The notes under the pieces are model-generated. The model did no database searches. It had not been told where the DNA came from and worked only from the letters and a program-made list of their open reading frames with translations. The position numbers and the translations under genes were made by a program. DNA of 63,472 nt, the filler included, from Trichosphaerium sp. ATCC 40318 (taxonomy: Eukaryota; Protista; Tubulinea), in NCBI GenBank assembly GCA_038496445.1. It is 3 parts of 3 records of this genome, joined end to end, with 100 filler letters (N's around TTAATTAATTAA, not from the genome) between each part and the next. Parts side by side here need not be neighbours in the genome. Positions count along the whole stretch, not along the records: positions 24,926 to 52,697 come from JALMLS010000116.1; 2 more parts are not named here. The stretch is one strand, 5' to 3'. Shown here piece after piece: positions 1 through 47,740 of this stretch; within the stretch, counting starts at the first letter, position 1, and each line of letters starts with the position of its first letter.

Positions 1-641
1 AAACTTGTCAGTAGGGCCTGTCTCAAGCCAGAATCTAAAACTCTGCTTTTAAGTGAGTGCTAGCACCTAAGCTACTCCTGTTTTCATAACATACGCCGTA
101 TCTATAGGGCTCTATGATAAAATTGTCAACAAGTTTTTAGTCAGAAAGCTGTACACAGTGCTCTACAAGAATCTTGGTCGATAATGCTCATGGGTAAATA
201 TGTCGAATGTCCAGAGGTAGAATACAGAACCGCCAATCCATAATTATTCAAGTAACCGTCCTAGGGTGGATTTTGATCCACCCGAAAGGACAACAGTGGG
301 TTTACTCAAAATACCCAACCCAAATAAAAGGCTTGCAAAGCACGCCTTGGAAAGGGTACACGGTGGATAATGCTCAGTTCAGAGTATCTTGGGAATGGGA
401 AGCTAGTTAAAAAACTTCAAATCTTTTGTGAACTCTTACTTTTACCCTAAGCCTAATTAAGAGTGCATGGGCACGTAGCATGTAAAGTATCGTATAGGTG
501 TGCTTAAATTTTGGGATATCACATAGACCCGAATCAGGAACTGCGTTTCGTTAATGTGGAACGGGTTTTAATTTGTGAATGTGCACGTGTTAAGGCTTGA
601 TCTTCATTGATAAATTGTCAAAGGCGTTTAAAGATAACAAC

Positions 642-27718: not shown

Positions 27719-29165
27719 ATGGAATTCACTATTTTGAAAGCTCCATACGCAATGGCGAGATCAATTACACCGTTAAATATGCCTTTGGAGATTCTTGGAG
27801 AAATATTTATTAGATCGCTTATTTTAGATATAAAAGATCTCCTACAGCTTCGGCGCGTTTGTAAATACTTTAAATCAGCGATTGATGGGACTCCTACGTA
27901 TAAAGTAATATTAGAGCCGTAAAAGCGTACTACACCGCCTGTTTAACTCCTTGATAGGATCTGTCAACTGTCTATACGTTTACTACAGTTGCTGGCTTCG
28001 AAATAACTCCAACAACTCAAAACGACACGTTACAAACTTCAAAACCGACTAAATCCGCATTTGGTAATATAATGGGGTTCGCCCAGGATAGAGATGGTCA
28101 CGTACGGCTTTTTTTGTGTTCTTGAACCGACACGCGTCATAATGTTATCTAATAACCCAACAGCTATTAATTTTGGACGAAACAAGCAGTAGTGTATTAA
28201 AACTAGACACAACTGACGGAACTGTAACAAAAATCGCCGGAGAAGATCGAGGAAATGGTACAATTGCACGCAAAGACTGATTGATTGTTGGTTTTGAATT
28301 TCACTTCGTTCTTTAGTCCAAAAATCAGTACTTCCAAGCCTTCTTATATTATGATACTAGGTCTACATGATGGACCAATACCATTAGCGATGTTTAATGC
28401 ACCTTGTGACATAGAGGTAGACAGTGATTACAACGTTTTTGTCTCGGACTCTGGAAACCATTGCGTTCGAAAGATAGACTTTTCAAAAGGTAACACGTGA
28501 TTCGTTTTTTTTAATTATTCAACTCGGTATTTATCCAAAAAGATATACACTAGTATAGCTAACTTTTGTTCAAATTAGGTGTAGTTGAGACAGTTGCTGG
28601 GAATAGAATTGCAAAATCGATATTTTATTTTCAAGAAGGTATTTGCTTTGATAACGTTGGTGATTTGATTGTAGCGGATACATGGCATTATCAACTGGCA
28701 AAAGTACCTATTAAAACATTACCTCAAGGCCAAACAAAAGCAAAAGTAAAAGTGCTTGCTGGAGTATCCAAAAAAGGTCAACAAGTAGTAGACGGTTGTG
28801 GTCAAAAAGCTACTTTTGCTTATCCAAAAAGAGTTTGTTATGATAAAGTCTTTAAAGTTATATTAGTGGTTGATAGGACAAGAATAAGATCAGTAACAGC
28901 TTCTGGGGTTGTTTCTACAGTATTAAATTTAAGAGACTTTACAGAAGATTGGAGTAAAGAAGACGTTAATGATGTTACAACAGATTCAAGAGGTGACTTA
29001 CTTTTAGGCTGTAGAAGTGGTATTCTTAAGTATTGCCGCACTACAAAACATATGGTTAAGCTAAAGACTGTTCCTTGCTTGAAAAAAATTACAAAACTAA
29101 GATTATTTGGTAATGAGTTGTATGTTTGTGTAAATTCTACAAGTATACTTTACGTCAAAATTTAA
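27719..29165 (+). CDS. F-box + NHL beta-propeller repeat protein
   Basis: F-box MPLEILGEIF...LLQLRRVCKYFK; NHL motifs FNAPCDIEVDSDYNVFVSDSGNHCVRKI, GICFDNVGDLIVADT, ATFAYPKRV. Confidence 0.8.
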
Positions 29166-29464: not shown

Positions 29465-31132
29465 ATGAGTTTCTTAGCTGCAATTAAACAAAGAAGACCT
29501 GACACAGATATTGATCCAAAAGATCTCTGTAAAGGCGAAAAGTATGATATTAATCTTCAGGGGTGCGGTCACGGTAATTACGGACGTTTAGCGCAAGTAC
29601 GTTGTTAAAATAGCCAAAAGTAGTTTCTTCCGATTCGTTTCGCTTTGTTTCGCGTGTCAGGTACAAAGAAGATATTTTAATACATATTTAGGCAAACTTG
29701 ATTCCGCTTGCACGGTTTACACGCTGTAAAGCCTTAAATAAGATAAAATTCTCTACAATAGCGACAGGTGCAGCTCATATACTCGGTTTGGACACAAACG
29801 GATCTCTTTACACTTGGGGAAAGTGTCATTACGGCCAGCTTGGCCATGGACAAAAGGATACAGACAGGCACGTACCGCACACGTATATAATTAACACTCA
29901 AACAGATGGTTGCCAACACTTGTAGACAAGCTTAAAGATGTAAAAATAACTGCTATCGGAGCAGGTGATTCCACGGCATTCGCAGTTAGCGCCGGTAAGA
30001 AAAACCTTTACCCGATCAAAGCTAAGTTCTTTCTTTAGGAAAAATATACGGTTGGGGTTGTGGCTTTTATGGTACTCGTGTTGTGTGGAGAGTAGTGTTT
30101 GTTGATACATTTTATAAGGTGCTCTTGGCCACGGGAATGAAACTAGTTTTTCTACTCCGAAAGTTATCGAGGCACTTAAAGATGATGTAGTGAGTGTTAC
30201 TGGCGGTGGTTTCCATACTGTTGTAGTTTCAAAATCTGCAATTTACTCGTTTGGTATACTACATACACAACAACTTGACGATGATTCATTGTTTCGTTTG
30301 ATCTTCTGATGCTCATCTTTTACTGACAACTATTTACTAATATTGTCCTAGGTAAGAATGAACGAGGTCAGCTAGGATTAGGAGATTGTTTAAATCGCAA
30401 TGTGCCAAACAAGATAAATAGTAAAGAGCTATTTAAGGAACAAGACCTGTCTTCGATACAAGTTGCTTGTGGCTTAGGTCATACAGTGCTAGTAAAAGAT
30501 GGTTGTGCTTACAGTACTGGTACATCCGAGGTTCTTTAATATTCAGAGCTTATTATGATCCAGGAGATAATAGTACTGGTCAACTTGGTATTGATAAAAA
30601 AGTAATGGAAGTAAACTTGTTCTCAAAGGTATATATCTTGCTTTAGATATCACTTATTAAATACCTTAGATGTCTACATCCAATGTTATAGCTGCTGCTG
30701 CGAGTAAGGATTCAACTATAATATTACAAAAAGATGGCACAGTTGTCAGCGTTTATAACCAAGGTGGTAAAGTAAAAACAGCAAAAAAAGTAGTATCTAT
30801 TGCAGCAGGTAAGAGTTGAACCTCATCGTAGAATGAGTTCGAATTTATGAGAATAATTAGGAGAGAAGCACTACCTTGCACTTGATACAGAAGGTTCCGT
30901 ATGGACTTGGGGAGAATCATACAAGGGCAAACTTGGAAGGAATGGTGAATATCATAGTGCGTTTTTTCTTTTGCCATTTAATAGCTTTATTTGTTTACGT
31001 CTTTTTTCAGAACCAGGAATAGCTGCAACAAAAGGAAAAGTAAGAAAGTCACTTGAAATTTGAGTTAATAGCCTTTAGGTTGTTCAAGTTGCTGCAGGAT
31101 CAAATCATTCGTTCGTGTTAACTAAAGAGTAA
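29465..31132 (+). CDS. RCC1-repeat protein
   Basis: IATGAAHILGLDTNGSLYTWGKCHYGQLGHG, GGGFHTVVV, FGKNERGQLGLG, VACGLGHT, VAAGSNHS across exons. Confidence 0.88.
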
Positions 31133-31304
31133 AGTGGAAAGAATTTAATTTAGACGAATTGGTTTGTTAACACGTATGTTTTCCTCTTGTTTTTGATTGT
31201 TGTATCACCTATATATCCTCTTAGCTGCGCAAAAAATGTATTGCAAAGTTTCACATTCGACAAGAAAAGGCGAATACAAAAACATCACATAATACAAACA
31301 TTGA

Positions 31305-31537
31305 CATATATTCGGACAGTAAGCATGGAGTTTGCTATTGCACTCTGTCTTTGTGCTTTAGTATCACCCCTACCAGGGAAGTCAATGAAGATGTTTGTGT
31401 TATCACCAGGACTCCAAGTATCGGCTTGGTCTCATTTACATGAAATAGTTGTACTTGGGGTAAGGTAAAAGGCTATAAAGGCCTTGACTTTCAAATTCCC
31501 TACGTAAGGAGCACGTGTACACTTTCGAACGCTTTTT
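31305..31537 (+). ncRNA. Structured ncRNA family, copy 1 (upstream element degenerate)
   Basis: CTGTCTTTGTGCTTT (31345); AAGTCAATG; AAGGC-TATAAAG-GCCTT (31469-31485); GACTT; GCTTTTT (31531-31537). 5' end inferred. Confidence 0.6.
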
Positions 31538-32122
31538 ATTGTATCTATTGACCTGTTCAGCAGTGTTGACTGTTGTTCATATTTTGGTACGCAACTTTCG
31601 AAAAGAAATTGCTCTTGTCAAAGAAATATGGTTAAACTGAACAAGCACGTTCATGTGTGACAAAACGGATGTGTCTGGGTTTAAATCATCGAAGCGTTGT
31701 ACTTGTCAAAGCCAGCTTTCGTAGTATTAGTAAATATCATTTTTTTGGTTTAAAACTCCTCCAGATTACCTAATACGATTCTTTGCGCGTAGAAAGCGAT
31801 ATAGTAGGTGGTTATACAGTTTGTAACATAACTACGATACGTACTATTTCATGCTGGTTACGCACAAGATTTGTTATAGCGTACGAATTCGAAGTTACGA
31901 CCGTCGCAAAGAGATCGCATCAGCAGAGAACCTCTTCGTTAAAAAAAATTGTGGTTTTGTCTGTTTGACCCACAATTCAACGATAACAAGTGTTTATCAA
32001 TAATGGGTACCGTTTAATATTTACCTGAATACTTTTGTAGAGGCACACTTTACAATAACTAAATAAGGAAGTTCGAATTGTCGAGACTGAGTTCAAAACG
32101 TATCGTCGTTTGAAGTTTGTAC

Positions 32123-32348
32123 TGTATTGTTTGATATCATGTATGTCGCCTTTCGAGGTACTCTGACTTTGTGCTTTGTTATCGGCCAAGTGGGTTAGTC
32201 AATGCAATTGTTCGGCTTTACAGCAGAACTTCCTGTTCTTACAGGCTCCTGCAAGAAATTGTTTCGGAGAGCGGAAATGGCTATAAACGCCTGACTTCAC
32301 CCGTAGTCTTACACAAATGGCACCATGCAAGTGTTGGACTAGCTTTTT
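32123..32348 (+). ncRNA. Structured ncRNA family, copy 2 (close paralog of copy 8)
   Basis: CTGACTTTGTGCTTT (32163); AGTCAATG; GGC-TATAAAC-GCC (32279-32291); GACT; AGCTTTTT (32341-32348). 5' end inferred. Confidence 0.62.
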
Positions 32349-32525
32349 GTAAATGTAATTTTTTACAATTGTACTAGTATGCTAGTCAATATCAATACAA
32401 CCTGACAGGCCTTTAATTTGGTGCAGCTTGATCAAAATGCTGAAGTTGTTCCGAGAACTGACACCTTTACCACTTAAATGTGAGTTTCTTGACTTTACAG
32501 TGTTGTACGATCTGTTCAAAATAAC

Positions 32526-32755
32526 AAAAGATAGACCATTATGTGTATGCACCCCTCTTACGTAAATCCACGAGAAGTCGAGGCATTTATAGCCTGCGTC
32601 AATCCCCTATACAATTTCTTGTGGATGGAGCCCGCTCAGCAGGGTTTTTGACTAAATCAAATAATTTCATGGACTTGCCTACGGGGGCTCAGACCAAAGT
32701 ACAAGGTCAGTTGCACAATGGTGGAACTTACACAGTAATTGATACTTTCAATGTA
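32526..32755 (-). ncRNA. Structured ncRNA family, copy 3 (inverted near-duplicate of copy 4)
   Basis: CTGACCTTGTACTTT (from 32710); AAGTCCATG; AGGC-TATAAAT-GCCT (32595-32581); CGACTT; CTTTT. Upstream CCACACTTTTTTT. Confidence 0.65.
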
Positions 32756-32802
32756 TTAATGTAAGCAGGCAAACTTGTTTTATGCTCATCAACTTTCAGA
32801 AT

Positions 32803-32815
32803 AAAAAAAGTGTGG
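32803..32815 (-). promoter_or_regulatory. DUSE-like upstream element of ncRNA copy 3
   Basis: CCACAC+T7, 105 nt upstream of CTGAC. Confidence 0.55.
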
Positions 32816-33415
32816 TTCTAGAAAATACAGGAATTAGGGTATTCCAGCCTTATACATCACAACAAAGTGAATACGACCGGACCATCTTTACTACATAAAG
32901 AAGCCTGCGCCAAAAATATGTTTGCAAGTTGTGCTTTAAATGGGAACAAAAAGCTCGAATAGTGCAATCGGTTAAACGCGTGGAGGTGTTTAACTGAGCT
33001 CTTGAAGCTACACAAACTCGAAAAAGCAGTAAAAAGGTAGTATGACAAAACAATAGTACGCAACAAGCCCTTCTCTGAACATGTAGATCTCTTTGAATTT
33101 GCCGTTGAATTGCGATTCTGTACCTTTAGAAACTACCCCTTTGTAATGCGGTTTATACAACCATAGAGCCCGAACTGCAATAGTTTAAGTATTGCAATGG
33201 GACGAATTGTACTAAACTGCAAAACTTAAGGGCTGTCAAAGAGATGGCTAATTTCCGGACTTGCTGTTTACAGCAAAGGAGTCATGCTATGCCTAGACTT
33301 TCATATGTTTGCGCGTTTATCTAAAGCCAAAGGTACAATAGATAATACTATGTATGACCTTTTAGGCCTCTGTGATGCAAGGCTGAAATAGACTAATTCG
33401 TGTATTTCCTCAATA

Positions 33416-33430
33416 CCACAATTTTTTTTT
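33416..33430 (+). promoter_or_regulatory. DUSE-like upstream element of ncRNA copy 4
   Basis: CCACAA+T9, 106 nt upstream of CTGAC. Confidence 0.6.
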
Positions 33431-33475
33431 CTTCAAAGTTGATGAGCATAAAACAAGGTTGCTTGCTTACATTAA

Positions 33476-33707
33476 TACATTGAAAGTATCAATTACTGTG
33501 TATGTTGCTGCCATTGTATATCTGACCTTGTACTTTGGTTTAGGCCCTTGTAGGCAAGTCCATGAAGTTGTTTGGTTTAATCAAACATCCCAGCTAAGCG
33601 GGCTCCATCCACAAGAAATTGTATTGGGGATTGACGCAGGCTATAAATGCCTCGACTTCTCGTGGATTTACGTAAGAGGTACCATACACATAATGATGTA
33701 TCTTTTT
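33476..33707 (+). ncRNA. Structured ncRNA family, copy 4
   Basis: CTGACCTTGTACTTT (33522); AAGTCCATG; AGGC-TATAAAT-GCCT (33638-33652); CGACTT; CTTTTT (33702-33707). Upstream CCACAATTTTTTTTT at 33416. Confidence 0.68.
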
Positions 33708-33824
33708 GTACCTGAAGTGATCGTCGCTGCCTCCAAGGAACGCTATACAAGTACAAACATATCTGAAGCATTGTGATGAAAGTGTAAAGTCAAACTATTG
33801 CTTCTTCTCCTCTTATTCAGGTGT

Positions 33825-34933
33825 CAAAAAATATACCGGTTGGAAGTGAAGATTGGGTTATAACAAAACCGACAGGGGTAATACAAGGTAACCTATTCAG
33901 AAAATTGAAATCCATACAACACGAAAAACATGTACTCAGTTTACAAAACAATGCTAAAGACCATGGAAGATCTAGAAAAAATTTAATACTTCCACTATCA
34001 TCCTACACACCCGTCACACACCTTTCAATCCCAATCAAACTTTGGCTCCTAAAAGTACGCACTAATACTTTACCTCTTAATGAGTTCCAACATAAACGCA
34101 GTAAGACTAAAGGTCACATCCAAGCTTATCAACTTTGTAACCAGATCAAATATCCTAATAGTTATTGTACTTTATGTAAACAAAAAAACATTCAATGCAC
34201 AGAAAACTTCAAACATTTTTGCACATGCAATAACGTTGAATCTAAGATAGATATAAAATATCACACAAATAGAATAATACAAGAATTTTTAGGAAAAAAC
34301 AAAGATAAAAACAATCCTATCGCTCTATACAACAAACATGCAGGCGGTAACAACCTTTTCTGCAAATCTAAGTGGCCAACCAAGAATAAAACCTACCCAT
34401 CGCCTGACCAAATAGAACTAGCTAAACTTGGTAGTTCCCTCACAATCAAAACAAAAGATTACAATATTAAACCCTGGTACCTAACCAATAACAACAACGA
34501 CCCTACCAATTTTAGAGGCTCTCAAGGTTACGTTACAGAAGAACTTATCAGTGAACTAAAAAAGAAAACCGGTACTAACAAAACAAACTCAATCAACGCC
34601 CTAGCTAAACGATTAAATCACATGTACATCACCTTTTTATACACTAAGTACCGTAATAGATGCCGTGAAACCCATTCCTTAAAAAAATCAAAGGGCCAAC
34701 ATGTCCCGATGCATTATATTAGATGGCAAGCTAAAGTTACACGCATGCGTCAATTTCTCCCTATTGCAAATGCAATACCCCTCTTTCCCAACACAACTAA
34801 CAATAATAATGTAATCCCATAGCATTCATTACAACAGCCAACCCAAACGCTTCGGCGTAGCCCTTTGGAGGCTAGAGGTGGGTTGGCTGTATAAAGATCG
34901 TTATTGACTTTTTTTTTTTTTTTTTTTTTTTTT
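33825..34933 (+). mobile_element. 5'-truncated non-LTR retrotransposon (L1-like zf-RVT C-terminus) with structured 3' UTR and poly(T) tail
   Basis: Intronless ORF 33821-34822 with LLKVRTNTLPL...YPNSYCTLCKQ...ENFKHFCTC. 12-bp TSD TTATTCAGGTGT at 33813-33824 and 34934-34945. T-run 34909-34935. Confidence 0.85.
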
Positions 34934-35254
34934 TTATTCAGGTGTAAAAATTGTGCAAAGGTGATAAGTACAAAAGCTTGTCCAACACGTGTACGGTGGG
35001 TTTTAAGCGAGATATTGCAACAAATGCAGTATTTATATCGCAAGGGCAGAGATACATTGAGTTGCTCGGTATTGAACATTATAAGATCACAACGGTAACA
35101 TTGTTAGCTACTAACACCATAAATATGTGCTCAGAATAAAACGATTGCTGAAGGACGAACAATAGCAATATTCATTACCTGTTAGGCAACTAAATTATGC
35201 TTGAACCTACATAAAGAGTTCTTTGGTAATTTGTGCATTGTTTCAAAAATCAAC

Positions 35255-35435
35255 AAAAGCCTACTTGATTAAGAGCACATCACCACTGACTGCAGGGGGA
35301 TTAAAGAGTCGAGACATTTATAGTCTGTGTCCGTTGTGTCAAGTACTTACACCTACATTGACTCGCCTAAGGGCAAGATAAAGCACGAAGTCAGTCGTAC
35401 AATGTCAAAACGCTGCTACAAGTTACAAGTATTCA
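35255..35435 (-). ncRNA. Structured ncRNA family, copy 5
   Basis: CTGACTTCGTGCTTT (from 35394); GAGTCAATG pairing with GACTC; AGAC-TATAAAT-GTCT (compensatory change); GCTTTT. Upstream CCCACTTTTTTTT. Confidence 0.68.
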
Positions 35436-35481
35436 AATTATTGGGGTTTTAATTTGTTTTTGTACACGGGTAATTTACCAG

Positions 35482-35496
35482 AAAAAAAAAAGTGGG
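35482..35496 (-). promoter_or_regulatory. DUSE-like upstream element of ncRNA copy 5
   Basis: CCCAC+T10, 101 nt upstream of CTGAC. Confidence 0.55.
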
Positions 35497-36224
35497 CAAA
35501 AGTTGATTGAGTTTTGTTCTTATTGCCTTGTATATTATATGCTGTAGTTGCTTCAAGTAATACCAACAGCCACAGCTGTAGAATCCACATCTAAAAAAGA
35601 AAGTCAAAAAAAATGTCCATCTCTTTGAAATCTCGTTAGATGAACACTTTTTATGAGCAACTGTATGAGTAAGCAAGACTGGTTTGGAGGAAGACTAACG
35701 TCTTGGTGGCTCTAACGCAACAAACGAGCAAGCGTTTATCTTCAAAAGGATTGTGAGGTTAGTCAGCAAAGTTCCTCAAACGCGAATTCGTGAGAATATA
35801 CAAACATCATCTTTTCAACGTGGTTTTTGAGAATTGCTTCGCAGTACATTTCATGCTGTAGACTGTATCTGCTAAACGATTTCTGCTTGATGCCACCTAC
35901 TTAAATACAATCCAAAATAAAATAAGGAGGTATGTATTCAACATGGTTCGAGTTTGCTATCTTTGCAACTTTTTGCTGTTTGTGACTTTTGGTTTTCGTG
36001 TTTAGTCAGATCTGACAGATCTTGCAACTTCTGTTAGTCCTTACAGAACTGAATTTGCTAGCAAGATCACCACAAGATCAGTTAGTTGTTAGTTCTTGTA
36101 AGATCTTACGATGGGACAAGAATTAGTCTCACAAACAACAAACTAGAAGATGATCGATACTAGTACCGTTTCGCTCCCACCCTAGTTTGTGAAAAATAAG
36201 CAATTGCAACAGAACAGTGATAGT

Positions 36225-37551
36225 TTATTGAGTAGGAGCTAGTGTAAGATACTTGGACGACATTGCTGTCTTAGAGTGTAACTCAGCTTTTTGTTTTTCA
36301 ACCAAGGCATAGCGAAATCGTTGTTGTTCGTATGTTCCGTAATTTTCGCGGTACTCAAACGGTGATAAAGTGTAGTCTGCTGGGACGCTAAGGTTGTTGT
36401 AAGAACTACGAGGAAAGAGGTCGTCTTCTTGGTTTAGAGGAAAAGAAGCAACAAGGGCTCCTTGGTTTTGCCCTAGCGAAACGCGGGTGGCATACGGTAA
36501 GAAGTAGGTACTATTGCTAGTTAATGAACCGGCAAGCTGAATCTTTTTGATAGATTTCAGGTGCAGCAAGTCTTTATCACAGATGAATGATGATTCAGGC
36601 AAGTACACAATTTCCGCATTTTCGAGTGCTTCTAGTGCTGCACTTGTAATATGACTAAGGCCTACCATGTTGATTTCGATAATATCATGTCCTATATCAA
36701 TAATGGCCTTGTCTGTTATGTTCGAACAATGTGTCAAATTAATTCTACGTACACCTTTCAATGCCATAATAGAATCATCTGTGAGCTTAGAGCATTTCGT
36801 CAGATCTATGGTATGGACGCCTTTCAGGTTTTTAATAAACTTCAACTTGTGGCAATGCTTCAAGTTTAAAGTATGTACGCCAGCTAAAACATCAACATTG
36901 GTAAGACGACTACATCTTTCCAATGAAATAGTATGAACACCTTTAAAAGCCGAGATGGTATCGTCATTAACCTGTTCACACCCTTTTAGCGAAACAGTAT
37001 GAGGTTTCAAGTTTCCCACAATGCGCAATGCGTCTTCAGAATTCTTGTTGAAATCCAAGTTAATACTTTTGAGGTTGGTGAGAGTCATCAGAAACTTCTT
37101 GGGGCAGTAAGTTATCGTAGATCCTATATCCACATGCCGCGCTTCTGACATAGCCATCCACATTGGGGTGGTCATCAATTCTGTAAACATAAAACGAGTA
37201 TTGAGTATGAAACCTCGCTGTCGGACAAAAGTAAAGTTTGTTCTTCGGTTAATCTTCAGTGTTTTATAACTAGAACGAGTTAATATCAAAGGTTGCTTTG
37301 AAAATAATTACTTACCCAACAGTATTATACATAATGTCACGCCATTTTCGGCATGTACGAGTAATATTTGTTCTGACATTTGGAACGAAATTGAATATGG
37401 TTTCTTCAATCTCTACTGGGACAGAAACAAACGGAGAGCTGGATTGGTGATAGAACTAAGCGAAAGTTAACTAATTAGGCTTCTACGAAAACACCTTGCT
37501 ACGTACAGTTTGTAGTTGGCGCTTAGGTTTACTGGCAGCTGGTGCTTCCAT
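36225..37551 (-). CDS. F-box + LRR protein, paralog 1
   Basis: F-box exon FVSVPVEIEETIFNFV...RTCRKWRDI, and a long exon with LAGVHTLNLKHC-type repeats. Confidence 0.85.
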
Positions 37552-37916
37552 TGGGGTGTGTTGCGTGTTTAAAATTTCTACGTTTGTCATATTACATTGT
37601 TGAGGACGTGTTGCAACTGTTGTATTGTGTAAAAAAATATCTATTCAAATGAAAAAATATGACATTTCTGTGTTGTAACTTATCAATCTGGATTGAGTTG
37701 ACCAAATATCAATCTACAACTTTTTTTGAACCTACTCTCTATCTGTTATTCTTGTGATACTAAACATAACTTACCAAAACTATATCAGATCTTCACAACG
37801 AAAAATTGTGCATTTTGGTAACTTTTCAAACCTTGGTGTGTATGGTATCTACTATACCATTAACGGCCTTTCATGAACTAAAAGGTATTCGGAAAAAATG
37901 CTTTACGAAAGAAACC

Positions 37917-38652
37917 AGTGAATGAAAGCATCACATTCAAGCTGTTTGTGTTGTTGTAAAGCGGGAAAAATGTCTTGAGTTCCTACCAAAAACTTCACAT
38001 AAAAGAAGTAAAACTCAAATCGAGAATTGAAGTTCTTTTTGGTATGGTCACGCGTAGTAGGTGGTTTTAAACCACTTTAAACAACTATTTCTTCTTTTCG
38101 GGTATTAAACGCATTGCATCCTCAACCTCACATGTGTTTCGCTGCTACTATGTAGATGCTTAGTCTAAGCTTCAAGAAGTTCCTCTTCTGCAATGTTTAA
38201 GCATTTATAGAATGTTTGTTTCTAATTTGTGCGTACTCTCAAGCGTTCATAAACCACTTCTATAATACGTTTAAGTGCAAAGGATGTGAAATCCCTGAAA
38301 CGCTGAGAGAGATAGCAAAGAGATGGCGCTCATATTTTGCTAAAACAGTTTCCGATACTTTCCTTAAAAGGTGTGAAGACCATTTGCCCTGCTAGTACTA
38401 CTCCGCGATGCCTAAATACATTATACTAGCATAAACACATGAATTGGCGGATTAACAAAAACAAAAGCTGAAAAAAAGAAATAGTTGTTTAAAGTGGTTT
38501 AAAACCACCTACTACGCGTGACCATACCAAAAAGAACTTCAATTCTCGATTTGAGTTTTACTTCTTTTATGTGAAGTTTTTGGTAGGAACTCAAGACATT
38601 TTTCCCGCTTTACAACAACACAAACAGCTTGAATGTGATGCTTTCATTCACT
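37917..38652. repeat. Perfect 177-bp inverted repeat (37917-38093 / 38476-38652) with 382-bp spacer
   Basis: The arms are exact reverse complements by eye. No TSD. Confidence 0.92.
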
Positions 38653-38816
38653 TTAGAATAGTGTATGGGTTTTTAATGTCGCCTTGTGTAAGCAAATAAG
38701 TAAATAACTCGGCTACTATTCGCGACTTAGTATCCAAAACCAGAACTCAACCACTCCAAACAGCTTTTTTGGTCTAACTGCCACCGTGGTCTGTTAAATG
38801 TATTAAACTTGAAAAC

Positions 38817-39019
38817 AAAAAGCTATCTTAGTATTAGCACATCACCACTTATTCTAGGGGGGCGGGAAGTCTAGACATTTATAGCCTATGTCGGTCGTGT
38901 ACAGCACCAGCACCGTTAAGATCAGTACTGCACGTCTGCATTGACCTGCCTACGGGGAAGACAAAGCACGAAGTCAGTCATGCAATGCCATAACCTGCCT
39001 CTAGCCAAGATTTCACTTG
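38817..39019 (-). ncRNA. Structured ncRNA family, copy 6
   Basis: CTGACTTCGTGCTTT (from 38977); AGGTCAATG pairing with GACTT; AGGC-TATAAAT-GTCT (G-U wobble); AGCTTTTT. Upstream CCACAATTTTTTTTT. Confidence 0.68.
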
Positions 39020-39064
39020 CTGCAATAACAGCCAAAACAGTTTTTGAAACTGAAGAATTTGAAC

Positions 39065-39079
39065 AAAAAAAAATTGTGG
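39065..39079 (-). promoter_or_regulatory. DUSE-like upstream element of ncRNA copy 6
   Basis: CCACAA+T9, 102 nt upstream of CTGAC. Confidence 0.6.
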
Positions 39080-39519
39080 CATAAAAGCAAACAATTTTGC
39101 ACTTGTCTTTTGATTGAGTACACTTGCAATCAAGTTTGTATAAACTTGGCGTGATTGCCATGCAAGCGGTGTGGTGGCGTATACAGCTTCTGAAAATGCA
39201 AAGAAATATTGTTCCCTAGGATTGAAGTTACATTTATGGTATGACCACGCGTAGTACGACTAGTTTGGTAACATTAAACGACTCTTTTTCTTTTTCTGCG
39301 CTTGTCTATTAAAACGCGTGGTAAAGTAACGGCTAGTGCATCGTTAACTGTAGACTGATTGCTATTTGCTTCTGAATAAATGCTTCCGCAGTAGCACCCG
39401 CCGTGATGTTGCATCCGTACGGCGTTAAGGTTAGGTACTAGAAAAGAGTGCAGAACGCAGAGTGTGGTGCAACAGTTTAACAGGCTTTGAACAACAACTT
39501 AATTGACTGTTTAAAATTG

Positions 39520-41032
39520 ATGGGTAACAACACAGCTCCCGAACCAGCTCCAAAGGCACCACAACTCAGTAATAAGGGTTTCTCCGACTGGCCACAAGAG
39601 TTAACAGACAAACAATGGTACGATTCGTATCATGTCATTATATCTGATACCCGTAGCGTGGGTGTTCTTGAGGTGAACCTAGAACAGAACAAAATTTCGG
39701 CTATCCCAGCGGAAGCGTTAATAGCTTTAACAGGTGTTCAAACACTCAATCTACGCAGTAATGCCTTTGTGGAAGGTAATTGGCGCTTTTCACAAAACCT
39801 GGTTACGCTTGACCTGTCATCCAACAATATATCATCTTTAAACCTCCAAGCACCTCAATTAACGAATTTAAATCTAAACAACAACAACCTGAGCAAAATG
39901 CCACCCGCTGTGTACAAATTACGGACGTTATGTGTTTTAAACGTAAGCAATAACTATTTAACAACTTTGGATGAAGATCTATCGACATTAGAACAATTGA
40001 CGGCTCTATTCGCAATGTCCAATAAAATAACTACAATACCATCAGTACGTCAATACAGTTAGCACAGTATTTTTACTACTGTTAACGTCATTTTTCGCGA
40101 TACACCTAGCTTCGCTTCGTAGCACTTTAACCTCAGCGTAGGAAATAGGTCAATTGACAAACTTGCATGTGCTAGCGTTATCAAACAATGAAGTGAACAT
40201 TCTACCACAAGAGCTAGATGACTGTGCTTCCCTTCAACGTATCTACTTGCGAAACAATCCGATCCCAAAATTTGGTACTCGGTTTACTACGCTTCATCAA
40301 CTTCAGCTTCTCGATATCGACGATCCAGAGCTTGTGGAACTACCATTTAAAGGTGAGTAAATGATACTCGCGATAATCACGTGATAGAGTACGTTTAAAC
40401 TAATTTATTTTGCGTAGCTCTAGAAAAAAACTCAAAACTTGTTATTCGTTGTGATATGGCTAGACTGTCGGAAGTATCAGAAGATTTATACCTTAGTTCT
40501 GCTTTAGGTGCACAAAACTTAAACTTATTACAAGAGTATGCTGTTACACATATCCTTATAGTAGGTGAAGAGCTTGAACCTTACTACCCCAATGTACTTT
40601 GTGTTTTCTTTATACGTTTGTTAAACCATTTGTTCAGTTGTTTAATTATAAAAAAATTGAAATCAGCGACACACCCGATGATGATATTCAAGCTTGCTTT
40701 AAGGAATCTATTGAATTTATTCAAGAAGGTCTTGATGTTGGCGCTGTTCTTGTCCACTGGTACACACTTGTTACATATTGCACCACAATTAACTGTTACT
40801 TCTAGTAAAGAAGGTATTTCGCGAAGTACAACAATAATAATGGCTTGTACGTCAAAAAATTTATGTGTTTATGCTTATGTTTAACCTTGGTTTTGTAGTT
40901 CTCATGCACAGGGACAAACGTGATGTGAATAGAGTTTTGGTACAAATAAAAAACCTTCGACAAGAAGCAAGACCAAACAAGGGGTTTATGGACCAGTTAA
41001 TTGCTTGGGAACAGGAATGCAATATTAAATAA
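39520..41032 (+). CDS. LRR + dual-specificity protein phosphatase, possible N-myristoylation (MGNN)
   Basis: LxxLxLxxNxL repeats; LYLSS...THIL; IEISD; spliced active site VLVHCKEGISRS; ARPNKGFMDQL. Confidence 0.88.
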
Positions 41033-41265
41033 TACACATGCAACACTAGAAATCAAAAAGAATCACTGTAAATAACAAGGTAAAAACTAGAAGAACCATC
41101 ACAAATAACCTAAAAAACTTGCCATCGCTCGGCGATTACATTTTCAAGTCTTCAGATTGCTTCCTAAACATGCGTTGAGTTCAATGAAAAAGTAAATACG
41201 TTATTTCAACATCACTTATTGTTAAAAGTCCTCTTTAACGCGCCTAAGAGTAAAAGCAATGAAGC

Positions 41266-41429
41266 AAAAAGCTGACAAATATGAGCCGCACACTCTACTG
41301 ATGGTGGTTTGCAGAATCAGGCATTTATAACCTTGTCTTAGAATGATCTTGATTGATCCCCCGAGGAGGCGACAACGAAACACAAAGTCAAAGTGCCTCG
41401 AGAGACTGGCGCAGCGTTTTCATATTTAC
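41266..41429 (-). ncRNA. Structured ncRNA family, copy 7 (shortest)
   Basis: TTGACTTTGTGTTT (from 41391); GATCAATC pairing with GATT (compensatory); AGGT-TATAAAT-GCCT; AGCTTTTT. Upstream TCCCACAATTTTTTT. Confidence 0.65.
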
Positions 41430-41472
41430 GTCATGAAAACTTTTTCCTTACTTTTGTACCCACCAAATTTTG

Positions 41473-41491
41473 AAAAAAAAAAATTGTGGGA
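41473..41491 (-). promoter_or_regulatory. DUSE-like upstream element of ncRNA copy 7
   Basis: TCCCACAA (matches WCCCAYAA) + T11, 98 nt upstream of TTGAC. Confidence 0.62.
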
Positions 41492-42923
41492 AAACTGATT
41501 CGAGTTTTTTTTTACATTAACGCTGTTAAATATTTGGAATCTTAACGTAGCTGAGCAATGCGCACCTCGTAATTCGGTCACAATTGAAATAGTTTTGCCT
41601 TTTCCTTGAACAAAGCTTCGCGTTTGTCTACGTGCAGGAGATAACTAACGTAGAAAAAGGTGCTAGCGTCTGTGATTCTGTACCAAGTTTTCACGCAAAA
41701 ACAATGAGAGTGCGGTTTTTGTCTTCACGCTGTAGCAACCAACGTACCGTATCCATGTAAGTCATTAAACGACCTCCAGCCGCTCTCTTTGCCTTGCGGA
41801 AGTTTTGTGATGCACGCGAACAACAGGTTATCGTGGGGCTGGAGAGGTACCCTGTAGTTGAAAACCGCGGCTCCTTAGCTGCTTGATATCTTATTTAAGC
41901 AAAAAAGCTTAGACACTAACAAAGAAACTCGCCATTACCTCCAGCCAGTACCCTCAGTTTCTTATACCAGGTTTAGATAGAATCGGCCGCAAAAGGCTTA
42001 TAGGTTGTTCTATTTGCTTTAAATTATGTCGCACCCTTGGTTGTAGTTTCAGCTTAGCATCCAAAGTGCTACTTGCGAACTGAGCAGAAGGAAAGTTCAA
42101 AGAGATAGCTCTCAGAGGTTTTCGTGAGTTCTGTATTTGGTCCAACTAAAACAAGACAAGAACAAAGTATCCACGCAAGACTAATAGGACTTGATAGAGG
42201 CATTCCTATCAAATCGTTCGTTTTGTGTAATTATCGACAAGAACTGAGATGTTTTCACTACATGAATAGTGTCCTATCGGTACTATGCTACACTCCAAGT
42301 ACCAAACCCACAGAGGTACGAAGCATTCCGTTAAGGAAAATAGGGAAAACGCGGTTTCTAGAATAAGAACGTAAGAATATGCGCCAACATACTTTTGCGT
42401 TTATATATGTTGCAGCCTGCTACGGTATTGTAAACCAAACTCCACACTACGCAATTCTGTCAGAATTACGTTACAACAAGGTCATATTTAAGTCCCTATT
42501 TACTCCTTACGCGTAAGAAAAGGGTTTTAAACAAAATTATATTCTGAGAGCTTATTTATTTTCTGGTTAGCTTCTGGCGCGAAGCCCACGCACATTGTGT
42601 GTTCTCATGAGTTACAAGTTCGTTTTAGAACAACACGATCCTAAAAAGGAACTGAGTCGACGTCTCTTAGCGATTTCTCTGTAGTATTTCACTCATATGT
42701 TGCCAGCACGCTACTACAACGTATTTACGCTAACAACTACACTCATTTAGGACAAATGTTGTCCAGGCACCAATTTTGTAATTTATGAAAGAACAGTACA
42801 AACAACTCAAGGCGTTTTTGCTATGCCAACAAAAAGACAAAAACTGTTCGTAAGTAAGCTTGGAAATTTGCTTATTTTTCAAAACATTGATGAAACAGTA
42901 CTACCAAACACTCAACGCAACAC

Positions 42924-44440
42924 ATGAACAACTCTCATAACACGTTTACTCCAAGAAACGCTATTGACCTGTTAAAGCTCTATCACTTCGGTATCGCTTT
43001 CTTCGGACCGCACTATCAACCTGAACCCAAACGTTTACAAACACCAGAGGTACCAATGCTTGTAACTTTTTCGAGGAAACATGCTCTAACCGTAAGTGTT
43101 TAGCGTACTATCGTTGTTGGTGCACCAGATATTCACACACTGCCGTACGAGGCTTTGTCATGTATTTTTTGGAAACTGAAAACACATTGGAGAAAAAGGG
43201 CTGTGCTTACCTGCAAAGAATGGAGAGATGTGATCTATGACAACGTTGGGTACGCCTTTTACAATTTTCAGTTTTTCAACTTTTCGACAACTTTTCTGCC
43301 TTGCTGCTTGAGGTATAATGCTTCTACAACCCATTACAACAATACTGAAATACATTTTTAAGCTATTTGAGGCCAATGTACCATTTTCTACGATTGTAAA
43401 CTTTACTTCAAAATCCGTGTACCTGACTTTGTTTGTAGTTTTCCTAAAGTAACGATTACACAAGAAAGTAAAGAAATGATAGCACGCCGCGGATTTTTGA
43501 ACTATGCCTTCTATAGCGTCCTTGATCGACAATGCGCGTTAGACAATTGCGCGATATTGAAGAAAGCTAAACATGTGAACCTAAGCAACAACCAAGCAAT
43601 AACAGATGAAATTCTTTCACTTGTCTCCAACGCCAAAGTACTTATTTTGGAGAAGCTCGCACCCACCATTTCCGCAGAAGCTATCAAAAACTTGGGGAAT
43701 TTCGAGCGCCACACTGTGACTCTAACTAAATCCAGACAAGTAGACAACTACGCATCAGCGGGTTTAAAAACGTGCATACAATTAATTTAAGAGGCTGTAC
43801 GCTATTGACAAACGTCAATGCCCTAGCGGGGACTTCTCACGTTATCTTGAGGGATTGTGTGCGCATAAGTGACGTTAATGCACTCGCGGGTGTTCATACA
43901 ATCGACTTGTCAGGCTGCAGACGCATTGGAGACAAATCAATATCGAAGCTGGCAGGAGTGCATACAATTAATCTAACAGATTGCATTAATGTTACCGATG
44001 TCGGCATCACTGCTGTTGCGCAAAAAGTGTACGAGATTAATATGACGCGCCTCCCTTTGATTACTCCTAAATCTTTCAAAGCACTTGGTAACGCTCGTAT
44101 TGTTTATATGCCAAGCAGCGATTCCATTCAAGATTCTGATTTAGGATTGTTGGATAACATTGAGAAGATTCGACTTGAAGGGAACAATATAACGGACGAC
44201 TGTATAAAGTACTTACCGTACGGTACTCGCGTGGCACTAGGAATAACAAATATCCAAACCATCTCAACTACCTTGCCAATGAACCAAGAAGAAGAGGACT
44301 TTCCACGTGGTTCTTACTACCTTCCTCCACTTGAAGGTCAGAGCGAGTTCAAATTCGACCCGTTTAGCTTTGATACAAACGAAGTCCAGAGACAAAAATA
44401 CTACGAAGACAACTTCTTCCCTGCCAATCTCTTTGATTAA
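42924..44440 (+). pseudogene. F-box + LRR protein, paralog 2, with a 1-nt frameshift at ~43752
   Basis: F-box LPYEALSCIF...LTCKEWRDVI. The LRR exon is split between ORFs 43476 and 43772 (VDNY.ISGFKNVHTI versus VNDDTISAFKGVHTI in paralog 1). Confidence 0.75.
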
Positions 44441-45159
44441 CAGATTACAGTGATTGTTAGTTATGGTAACCGACTTTCGAAATGGTCCTTGCCGAAAACA
44501 CTTACCAAGTTTATGTAAAACACAATAAAAAACCGCTTTTGAGATACTTGTTTCGTTGCGTATATTGAAGTATTACTACAGACCAATTACTGTTTCCAAA
44601 ATGTGCTGTAAGACTTAATTTCTTGCTTGCCATTATCCAATATCATTACATGAGACAATGGCGAACAGAATTCTCTACACTCAAAGCGAGACAGAGATGG
44701 CAAACAACAGTTTAATGAAAAATGCAAATGCACCCAAGAATTAAAACTAGCTCTCAATCCCCTTTTTTTTTCCATCGCTAGGCTTGTACGAAACGTTTTC
44801 TTGGACTTCCTTTTGATATCTACACCGACTAGGTTACGCAGTATCACAGTAACCTTTTCTGGTTCCATTGGCTTGCAGTTAAAACACAAAGAAACATTTG
44901 TACATACATAAATAAACCTCAACTCTGGTAAAAGAAACTACATCAAAGCTGTGAACGTGCCACTGTAGCTTTCCATGTTGGTAAGTGCTTTTTTTTCCAT
45001 TTTTATTCTTCCGTAATTTGCAATTCAGGAGTTCGACTTTGGAACGAATAGACGCTTGTCTTGCGTGACTATTAATGTGTACAGCCTTGTTGTTGGAACA
45101 CTTAATGTTGGGTCAGTTTGCAAAATACTAGTTTGATGAAGTTTCTGTTTGTCTAAACC

Positions 45160-45391
45160 AAAAAGCTAGTCCAACGTGTGAATGATGCCATTTGTGTAAG
45201 ACTACGGGTGAAGTCAGGCGTTTATAGCCATATCCGCTCTCCGAAACAATTTCTTGCAGGAGCCTGTAAGAACAGGAAGTTCCGCTGAAAGCCGAACAAT
45301 TGCATTGACTAACCTACTTGGCCGATAACGAAGTACTAAGTCAGAGTATTCGAAAGGCGACAAACACTGACGTGGAGCGCTCTGATGTGTA
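45160..45391 (-). ncRNA. Structured ncRNA family, copy 8
   Basis: CTGACTTAGTACTT (from 45344); AGTCAATG; GGC-TATAAAC-GCC; TGACTT; AGCTTTTT. Upstream CCACAATTTTTTTT. Confidence 0.66.
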
Positions 45392-45437
45392 ATATTGAGG
45401 GAAAACAAACAACTTTTATATTGGCAAACTTAGATAT

Positions 45438-45451
45438 AAAAAAAATTGTGG
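45438..45451 (-). promoter_or_regulatory. DUSE-like upstream element of ncRNA copy 8
   Basis: CCACAA+T8, 107 nt upstream of CTGAC, with ATATAAAAG about 30 nt downstream. Confidence 0.6.
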
Positions 45452-46335: not shown

Positions 46336-47740
46336 ATGAACAACATTACCAACAATGCACGCTCTTCTGATGACTCTGATGCGAGTGATCTGCAAAGTTC
46401 ACCAAAGCGTACCCTCCAAACAAATGAAGTACGCTAAAAAAAATTCGTCGAAACTGTAACTAACTAGTTTGATACTTAGAGCCAACACCCTACTCTTGGT
46501 TCATTCCCTGTAGAGCTTAAAGTTGCCATTTTCAGATTCATTCCACTTAACCCCAGAGGAAAACTTCCATTCGTTTGTTCAGAATGGTGTGCCATTGTAT
46601 ATAACCACTTTGGGTACGTCAACACCTACGTTACACTATTTTGTAGTTTTCTTCAACTTTTCTTTAAGTCGCCTTCCCTTAATTTGTTACTGTAGCACCA
46701 AAAAGTTTCAAGTAACCAAAGACAACATGGATGTAGTTACTATAGACGCATTCTTACGCAACACTCTTTTGCGTTTCAAGGAGCCTCTTCAGGCTAACGA
46801 CTGGGAACAGCTGCTACAAGCCAAACACATTTGCCTATCCCGAGCTGACGAACGCTTTATTGAAGACTTTCTATTTGCTCTCCCCGATAATAATGTACAC
46901 ACAGTGAAGTTGAATTTCAAACGGACCAGCCTTGATGTGTTATCCACGTTGGGCCACAAACACCCGCACACAGTGTCTTTGATTGGAAATAAGATCCTGG
47001 ACTATGACACTCTGGCCGCTTTTGCAGGAGTCCATACCATTGTTTTGGACCGCTGCAAGCTTCTGCATAGCGTCAATTGCCTAGCTGGCGTACATACTAT
47101 CAGCCTAAGGTATTGTAGCAATCTAGATACCATTGATCAGCTCGCAACAGTCCATACTATTGATCTATCCAACTGTAGGAAAATAACCGACAATGCAATA
47201 ATGGCTTTGAACGGCGTTTCGGTCATTAATTTGACCAATTGCTCGAAGATAACAAACCAAGGAATTGTACATATCGGACCCAAAATACGTGAAATTAATC
47301 TGACAAACTTGTTTAGAGTTACAGGTCGGGTATGTAAGGCACTCTATAATGCTGAAATAGTGTACCTACCTGGAAACTCGAACTTCTACAACAGCCACTT
47401 AAAACACCTGACGTCTATCAAAAAGATTCATCTACGCGGAAAACACATTACGGCCGATAGCGCTAAGTTTCTACCTTACGCTACTCGCGTTTCTTTGGAT
47501 CGTAAACGCAGTAGCCTGATTGATGAAATGAGGGAGGCATTTCATAGCAATGGAGCAGATAATAAATTTCAGTATGGTTCGTACTTGAACCTAGAGCTAC
47601 CAACAAACTACAACCCTCCAGAATTTGTATACGAATCAGGCGTAGAAACATATGAAGCCCAAAGATTGGAGTACGCACGTTATCACCAAAACGTGGTAGC
47701 TCAGATGCGCCTCAGTACAAGCTCTCAAAAATACTTGTAA
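46336..47740 (+). CDS. F-box + LRR protein, paralog 3
   Basis: F-box FPVELKVAIFRFI...VCSEWCAIV; LAGVHTISLRYC repeats; C-terminus shared with paralog 1 (LPYATRVSL...TYE.QR..YA). Confidence 0.85.

Follow-up and report, generated by a model that had tools for sequence, protein, structure and literature searches.

A cluster of eight predicted structured RNA genes in the tubulinid amoeba Trichosphaerium sp.

The RNA gene cluster and its predicted fold

The genome assembly of Trichosphaerium sp. ATCC 40318 (Amoebozoa, Tubulinea) contains a cluster of short non-coding loci which an earlier note had singled out as a multigene, structured and probably RNA polymerase III (Pol III)-transcribed family. 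The window analysed here is a stretch of 63,472 nucleotides (nt), filler included, joined from three parts; all coordinates refer to it and all evidence comes from this one genome. The piece carrying the cluster (31,305–45,451) has a GC content of 34–42% per kb, in line with the 37.69% published for Trichosphaerium (PMC10521059), and derives from the nuclear genome of a tubulinid amoeba. All eight loci were found at the places and on the strands claimed for them, with their motifs in the same order, and are almost certainly real structured RNA genes. They are named here after their positions in kb:

31300..31536 (+): copy 31.3, predicted RNA of 237 nt; A-box, no CCAC element; mostly overlapped by antisense cDNA
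32117..32347 (+): copy 32.1, predicted RNA of 231 nt; A-box present, CCAC element out of register
32526..32759 (-): copy 32.5, predicted RNA of 234 nt
33472..33706 (+): copy 33.5, predicted RNA of 235 nt; reference copy
35255..35439 (-): copy 35.3, predicted RNA of 185 nt
38818..39023 (-): copy 38.8, predicted RNA of 206 nt
41267..41433 (-): copy 41.3, predicted RNA of 167 nt, minimal form; closing helix begins 56 nt after the upstream element
45161..45395 (-): copy 45.2, predicted RNA of 235 nt

The predicted lengths of 167–237 nt agree with the ~165–235 nt proposed earlier. The motif order described at that time (a box, a small GC hairpin, RGTC-AATG, a variable domain, a hairpin with a TATAAAN loop, GACT and a T-run) holds throughout, whereas some of the listed spellings do not: copies 31.3 and 41.3 have CTGTC and TTGAC, respectively, as their box, RGTC-AATG is replaced by GTCCATG in 32.5 and 33.5 and by GATCAATC in 41.3, and the stem of the TATAAAN hairpin (T-stem) in 32.1 and 45.2 has three pairs and, in addition, a U-U or a bulge. 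The T-loop plus GACT pattern occurs eight times, against 0 in 200 Markov shuffles (maximum 0), and the box pattern eight times against 0.16 expected; both patterns were derived from the copies themselves, and the counts show only that the loci are not background. A covariance model built from copies 32.5, 33.5, 35.3 and 38.8 recovered 31.3 (E = 9e-11), 32.1 (6e-8), 45.2 (5e-7) and 41.3 (0.037), and found no ninth copy in the analysed DNA, the next match having an E-value of 0.56. Pairwise identity among the paralogues is 53–72%, except for two young duplicate pairs, 32.5/33.5 (89% identical) and 32.1/45.2 (88%). Therefore, about six independent lineages carry the evidence.

All copies can be drawn in a common fold, in which a 5'/3' closing helix is followed by hairpin A, the small hairpin B, a helix RRGUC/GACUY and, finally, the U-run. 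The RRGUC/GACUY helix encloses an MAUG linker, one to three variable hairpins and the UAUAAAN T-loop-like hairpin. Hairpin A and the paired ends had been overlooked in the earlier note, as had a bipartite upstream element with fixed spacing; what that note called the 'box' corresponds to the loop of hairpin A together with its 3' arm. This hairpin displays many two-sided changes and has the loop YUG(A/U)CY. The elements of copy 33.5 are:

33510..33539 (+): hairpin A; outer and inner stems with a U-U internal loop between them, terminal loop CUGACC (33522-33527)
33544..33555 (+): hairpin B, the small GC hairpin
33556..33564 (+): AAGUC, the enclosing helix's 5' strand, with the conserved linker MAUG
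33611..33622 (+): GAAA tetraloop hairpin in the variable domain; also in 32.1, 32.5 and 45.2
33638..33652 (+): T-loop-like hairpin, 4 bp + UAUAAAU
33654..33658 (+): GACUU, the enclosing helix's 3' strand
33703..33707 (+): T-run, Pol III-type terminator

The compensatory helix changes reported earlier are indeed present. By hand count, 38 of 40 cells of the enclosing helix are paired, with a swap from G-C to A-U in 41.3 and from A-U to G-C in 35.3 and 41.3, as are 30 of 32 cells of the T-stem. Over the whole fold 90% of cells are paired and 8 of 20 pairs have changed on both sides, a result equalled by none of 500 shuffles and compared with 30–44% pairing in slid controls, although the alignment was fitted to the structure and the test leans towards it. 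The assignment of the RNA strand by G-U pairs was likewise upheld (12 on the sense strand, one on the antisense). The closing helix is long (20–30 nt), interrupted and unconserved in sequence; among the six independent lineages each RNA's 5' end pairs best with its own 3' end (rank 1–4 of 720 permutations), whereas control pairings of the flanks (10357 and 19644 of 40320) and of the antisense strand (4903 of 40320) were not significant. The UAUAAAN hairpin is called T-loop-like only for its loop size and for the U and A at loop positions 1 and 5.

Other readings of these sequences were considered and rejected. Pairing of the TGACY loop with RGTCA, found with RNAalifold, accounts for 34 of 40 cells, with three changes lacking compensation, and fails in four copies, against 38 of 40 cells, with compensation, for the 3' GACTY strand; it may nevertheless serve as a switch. 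TATAAA is not an internal DNA TATA box, since its flanks covary and the G-U pairs lie on one strand. As stated previously, the loci are non-coding: indels break the frame and open reading frames (ORFs) overlap only two copies. Searches with Rfam 15 of the whole piece and of single copies gave no match (best E-values of 0.63–10, far below gathering). The proposal of a multigene, structured, probably Pol III-transcribed non-coding family is thus supported by RNA lengths, covariation, G-U strand bias, the absence of an Rfam match, and the promoters, T-runs, cDNA and lack of mobile-element hallmarks described below.

Promoters and transcripts

In six copies CCAC followed by a T-run lies 98–107 nt upstream of the box and 56–58 nt before the predicted start (as CCAC(AA) + T-run). 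Without gaps, the six share invariant columns at CCAC (0–3), T (6–12), AA.T (20–23) and AAAA (34–37); for five lineages, the chance probability of these four blocks, including the AAAA at +34..37, is ~7e-8. Copies 31.3 and 32.1 have the A-box only, at the expected distance. The upstream sequence element (USE) and A-box were located as follows:

33416..33453 (+): promoter of 33.5; CCAC + T-run (USE-like, or DUSE-like as defined below), A-box at +34..37
32778..32815 (-): promoter of 32.5, USE + A-box
35458..35495 (-): promoter of 35.3, USE + A-box
39042..39079 (-): promoter of 38.8, USE + A-box
41452..41489 (-): promoter of 41.3, USE + A-box
45414..45451 (-): promoter of 45.2, USE + A-box
31275..31281 (+): A-box belonging to 31.3, 70 nt upstream of the box
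32092..32098 (+): A-box belonging to 32.1, 71 nt upstream of the box
31942..31954 (-): orphan USE lacking the A-box; followed by no RNA of the family and not itself a member

In Dictyostelium, the upstream sequence element DUSE, [AT]CCCA[AT]AA, is located ~63 bp upstream of small nuclear RNA (snRNA) and Class I RNA genes (PMC3188802). The CCAC element is a variant of it, its match to the full TCCCA[AT]AA being inexact. In humans and green algae, type-3 promoters recruit Pol III if they have a TATA box and Pol II if they do not (PMC8287931). The type-3 layout, with USE and TATA-like box at fixed spacing and a T-run at the end, is complete in six copies and reduced to the A-box in two; all copies end in C followed by T4–5, and several have a second T-run behind. 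Since the promoters match the DUSE layout and the TATA rule of type-3 promoters, and the genes end in T-runs, transcription by Pol III from a type-3 promoter is probable on sequence grounds.

Transcripts were sought in three sequencing runs of one sample without a library record, whose spliced joints and adapter ends show them to be cDNA. The comparison covered copies 31.3, 32.1, 32.5, 33.5 and 45.2. A 158-nt contig covers copy 32.1 at 32124-32281 with two differences from the window, at 32192 (G>A) and 32220 (A>G), which may represent an allele, a ninth paralogue elsewhere or an assembly error. A second contig, of 161 nt, has the 5' letters of 45.2 and starts no further upstream than 45393, i.e. 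58 nt after the element, although 15 of its 5' letters are not displayed and could be adapter. Both contigs break off in the A-rich T-loop region, as would be expected if oligo-dT had primed internally on a sense RNA, although this is no proof of it. No contig was found for 32.5 or 33.5 in the three runs.

Downstream of the orphan USE, at a distance of 56 nt, a cDNA contig has its 5' end at 31898, marked by a template-switch adapter; this offset (+56) is also where the closing helix of 41.3 begins. The transcript behind the orphan USE (minus strand; element and transcript together span 31349–31954 of the window) is at least 550 nt long, has no long ORF, folds no better than shuffles (z = -0.16) and covers copy 31.3, in antisense, from 31349 onwards. 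It is possibly a Pol II long non-coding RNA. A degenerate CCCACAATT at 31969 (+) stands back to back with the orphan USE, and a low-depth chimeric contig has a plus-strand 5' end near 32039.

Duplication and genomic neighbourhood

Copy 33.5 is an inverted duplicate of 32.5, promoter included; the two promoters are 91% identical and were duplicated together with the gene. The flanks of paralogues are 57–66% identical, compared with 56% for random sequence and 69–89% for the gene bodies. Where 32.1 and 45.2 differ, the changes are concentrated in the closing helix and in hairpin A, on both strands of each, and the pairing is preserved. The hallmarks of short interspersed or miniature inverted-repeat elements (SINE, MITE), namely target-site duplications, terminal inverted repeats and A-tails, are not found at the copy borders. 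The copies arose by local duplication at the DNA level under selection on structure, rather than by retroposition.

Several other features lie in or near the cluster. A spliced, expressed gene at 30500-31217 (+), with RCC1-like repeats recognized by eye, ends ~80 nt short of copy 31.3; cDNA contigs over the gene immediately to the left of the cluster reveal GT-AG introns of 54 and 39 nt. A further ORF at 28566-29165 (+) has weak matches to NHL repeats. Between 33812 and 34945 (+), ~105 bp downstream of the 33.5 terminator, there is an insert bounded by a 12–13-nt direct repeat (TTATTCAGGTGT). Its 333-amino acid ORF carries a CxxC..E..H..C motif and is closest, among the named Atlas clusters, to zf-RVT (a weak match, score 0.90); the insert also contains a three-way hairpin (34828-34895) and, on the same strand as the ORF, a T27 run. 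It looks like a 5'-truncated retroelement of the kind without long terminal repeats. Dictyostelium TRE3 elements sit at a similar distance behind tRNA genes (PMC5006619); here the arrangement is a single case. An inverted repeat of 190 nt at 37917-38106 and 38463-38652 (98% complementary, arms 356 nt apart), with a partial copy at 39218-39305 (75% similar), is probably a young MITE or non-autonomous DNA transposon. A multi-intron gene at 39487-40900 (+) encodes N-terminal leucine-rich repeats (LRRs) and a C-terminal part that resembles dual-specificity phosphatases, by eye only.

Three paralogous LRR genes with GVHT repeats are interspersed with the RNA genes, at 36225-37289 (-), 43476-44440 (+) and 46523-47740 (+). 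The last one encodes a protein that is 100% identical, over the matched stretch, to one from a Trichosphaerium transcriptome (MMETSP0405, taxon 498012). Several of the best outside relatives of these genes are on gene-dense giant-virus-like contigs (L004-L008) and others in Phytophthora, the former in line with the reported transfer of genes from viruses to Trichosphaerium. The RNA family is found neither on the giant-virus-like contigs of the LRR relatives nor, with narrow patterns, in IMG/VR, and there is therefore no sign of a viral origin.

Interpretation and comparison with known RNAs

We propose, with a probability of roughly 0.55, that the cluster consists of lineage-specific Pol III RNA genes whose products act as a protein-binding scaffold of a ribonucleoprotein (RNP) or as a decoy, a mode of action modelled on that proposed for the dictyostelid Class I RNAs. 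The CCAC/T-run element would be bound by a SNAPc-like factor and the A-box, ~25 nt upstream of the start, by TBP; transcription would begin ~56–58 nt after CCAC and stop in the T-run. The ends of the RNA would then close in the long helix and display a fixed core made up of the YUGACY loop, the RRGUC-MAUG junction and the T-loop hairpin stacked on a short helix, similar to a tRNA elbow. This invariant core might bind proteins shared by all members, while the one to three variable hairpins might diversify them and set their individual properties.

Several observations weigh against this proposal. Folding z-scores of whole RNAs are weak (-2.6 to +0.2), and in six of eight unconstrained ensembles the enclosing helix has a pair probability of 0.02 or less; the helix therefore rests on covariation in about six lineages and would need tertiary contacts or a protein. 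The CCAC element is missing from two copies, and transcript support amounts to two low-depth contigs from one sample, without strand or ends. No homologue was detected in another organism: narrow pattern scans gave 0, 6 and 80 matches in IMG/VR, two in JGI metagenomes and four in GTDB, none reaching a covariance model E-value below 0.3, and three of five inspected matches are inside ORFs; these patterns need exact matches within a limited spacer range and exclude close relatives only. Finally, the functional step is by analogy.

Among the alternatives, amoebozoan vault or Y-type RNAs binding a TROVE protein (TEP1 or Ro60) fare best, although they too are unlikely. The closing helix, U-run, T-arm-like hairpin and clustering would all suit such RNAs, a trypanosomatid vault RNA reaches ~190 nt (PMC9326685) and a T stem-loop is conserved in YrlA (PMC4201824). 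However, neither the GUCCGA Ro motif, which in Y and YrlA RNAs lies near the 5' end (searched as GTCCGA, the looser bacterial form excepted), nor internal A/B boxes are present in any predicted transcript, and no Rfam model matches. In addition, the terminal helix is the least conserved part here, whereas that of trypanosome vault RNA carries conserved stretches (PMC9326685).

An expanded, degenerate offshoot of RNase P/MRP, or another catalytic RNA, that would have retained a T-loop, a GNRA loop and a multibranch fold, has a still lower standing. MRP RNA typically has a type-3 promoter (PMC8287931), four copies contain GAAA tetraloops, and the order of closing helix, hairpin with U-rich internal loop, AAGUC, T-loop domain, hairpin and closing helix is reminiscent of it; yet the CR-I and CR-V patterns of the P4 pseudoknot were not found in the copies, Rfam yields no P/MRP or ribozyme match at E up to 10, and AAGUC covaries with the 3' GACUY rather than with the strand before the closing helix, so that no P4-type pseudoknot is formed. 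Improbable to the same degree is a guide or small-RNA precursor, in which the core would bind an enzyme and the variable segments pair with targets such as rRNA or virus-derived mRNAs. A conserved core with divergent modules and adjoining LRR genes with relatives on giant-virus-like contigs could be read in this way, but the variable parts fold into hairpins instead of being single-stranded, the rest of the contig holds no complementary stretch, the fetched loci give only 14–17-nt matches (chance-level or pattern-selected), and there is no C/D box pair.

The diverged copies in both orientations, with homology ending near the element borders, might also recall a decayed SINE or other non-autonomous mobile element that kept its RNA structure for mobilisation. 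This is very improbable, given that retroposition would lose the upstream promoter, which travels with six copies in fixed register, that the borders lack insertion hallmarks and that the young duplicates differ by paired changes. Least probable of all is a spliceosome decoy or spliced non-coding RNA whose 5' part mimics a 44–50-nt intron (GT at -15..-18 in all copies, a CUGAC loop fitting the branch consensus, pyrimidines, AG; local introns of 39 and 54 nt), since the contigs over the 32.1 and 45.2 type contain no joint, 41.3 has no nearby AG, and the GT and pyrimidines belong to the closing helix and a covarying stem, respectively.

The family lacks the defining motifs of named RNAs, as had been anticipated for U snRNAs, signal recognition particle (SRP) RNA, tRNA, small nucleolar RNA (snoRNA) and Class I RNA. 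In the copies, SRP helix 8 (CAGG-GNRA-AGCA) and C/D snoRNA box C (RUGAUGA) are absent, the recognition motifs of U1, U2, U6, U6atac and U12 and the Sm site occur only as isolated single-copy chance matches, and no C-rich telomerase template is shared (one 6-mer in one copy, assuming a TTAGGG repeat). ARAGORN predicts no tRNA genes, and no cloverleaf with anticodon and D arms is formed. Such RNAs are undescribed for Trichosphaerium or Tubulinea in the literature searched, most subscription journals being outside its coverage. The family, so far from one genome, is undescribed, although its general kind is known; new structured RNA gene families in eukaryotes are rare. That it represents a class of Pol III RNP (or catalytic) RNA hitherto unknown in eukaryotes, with a conserved tertiary core of its own and exchangeable modules, is a more tentative idea; if true, it would imply a dedicated cellular function unlike that of any catalogued RNA and a gene family possibly present in other Tubulinea.

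With type-3 Pol III RNAs (U6, SRP, MRP, and plant and ciliate telomerase RNA; PMC8287931) the family shares the USE and TATA-like box at fixed spacing, the T-run terminator and the size range, but it differs in matching none of their defining motifs and Rfam models, in having no shared telomere template and in comprising at least eight strongly diverged genes. The DUSE-like element and TATA-like box provide a promoter signature for Tubulinea, usable to list snRNA-type genes of the Trichosphaerium genome; the same strategy uncovered telomerase RNAs in algae and ciliates (PMC8287931). Vault and Y/YrlA RNAs resemble the family in (presumed) Pol III transcription, clustered paralogues, closed ends, T-arm-like hairpin and variable middle, whereas here there are no internal A/B boxes or GGUCCGA-type motif, the terminal helix is not conserved in sequence and no D-arm-like hairpin was seen. 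The likeness to tRNA comprises a 7-nt loop with U first and A at position 5 and a short stem that stacks on a closing helix across a joint of 0–1 nt; however, the loop is UAUAAAN and not UUCRANY, its closing pair is C-G, the stems have 4+5 and not 5+7 bp, and the whole is part of a larger RNA.

The closest parallels are found in the dictyostelid Class I and II RNAs, which are also amoebozoan, intergenic and clustered, with rarely identical paralogues, a DUSE-type element ~60 nt upstream (here in six copies), paired 5' and 3' ends, a downstream T-run and a variable interior. Class I RNAs are 42–85 nt long, with a short stem and, adjoining its 5' strand, the unpaired 11-nt motif CCUUACAG, and are reported only from dictyostelids (PMC7919456, PMC3188802), social amoebae in which they have been linked to multicellularity; they are clustered, DUSE-driven, end-paired, variable in the middle and protein-bound (PMC7919456). 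The Trichosphaerium RNAs, by contrast, measure 167–237 nt, lack CCUUACAG in every transcript, and have a 20–30-nt interrupted closing helix in place of the short terminal stem, as well as a covarying multibranch core. The family thus resembles Class I RNAs in its genomic behaviour but is not a member of that class: it is an independent multigene family of larger and more structured RNAs, carried by a solitary tubulinid.

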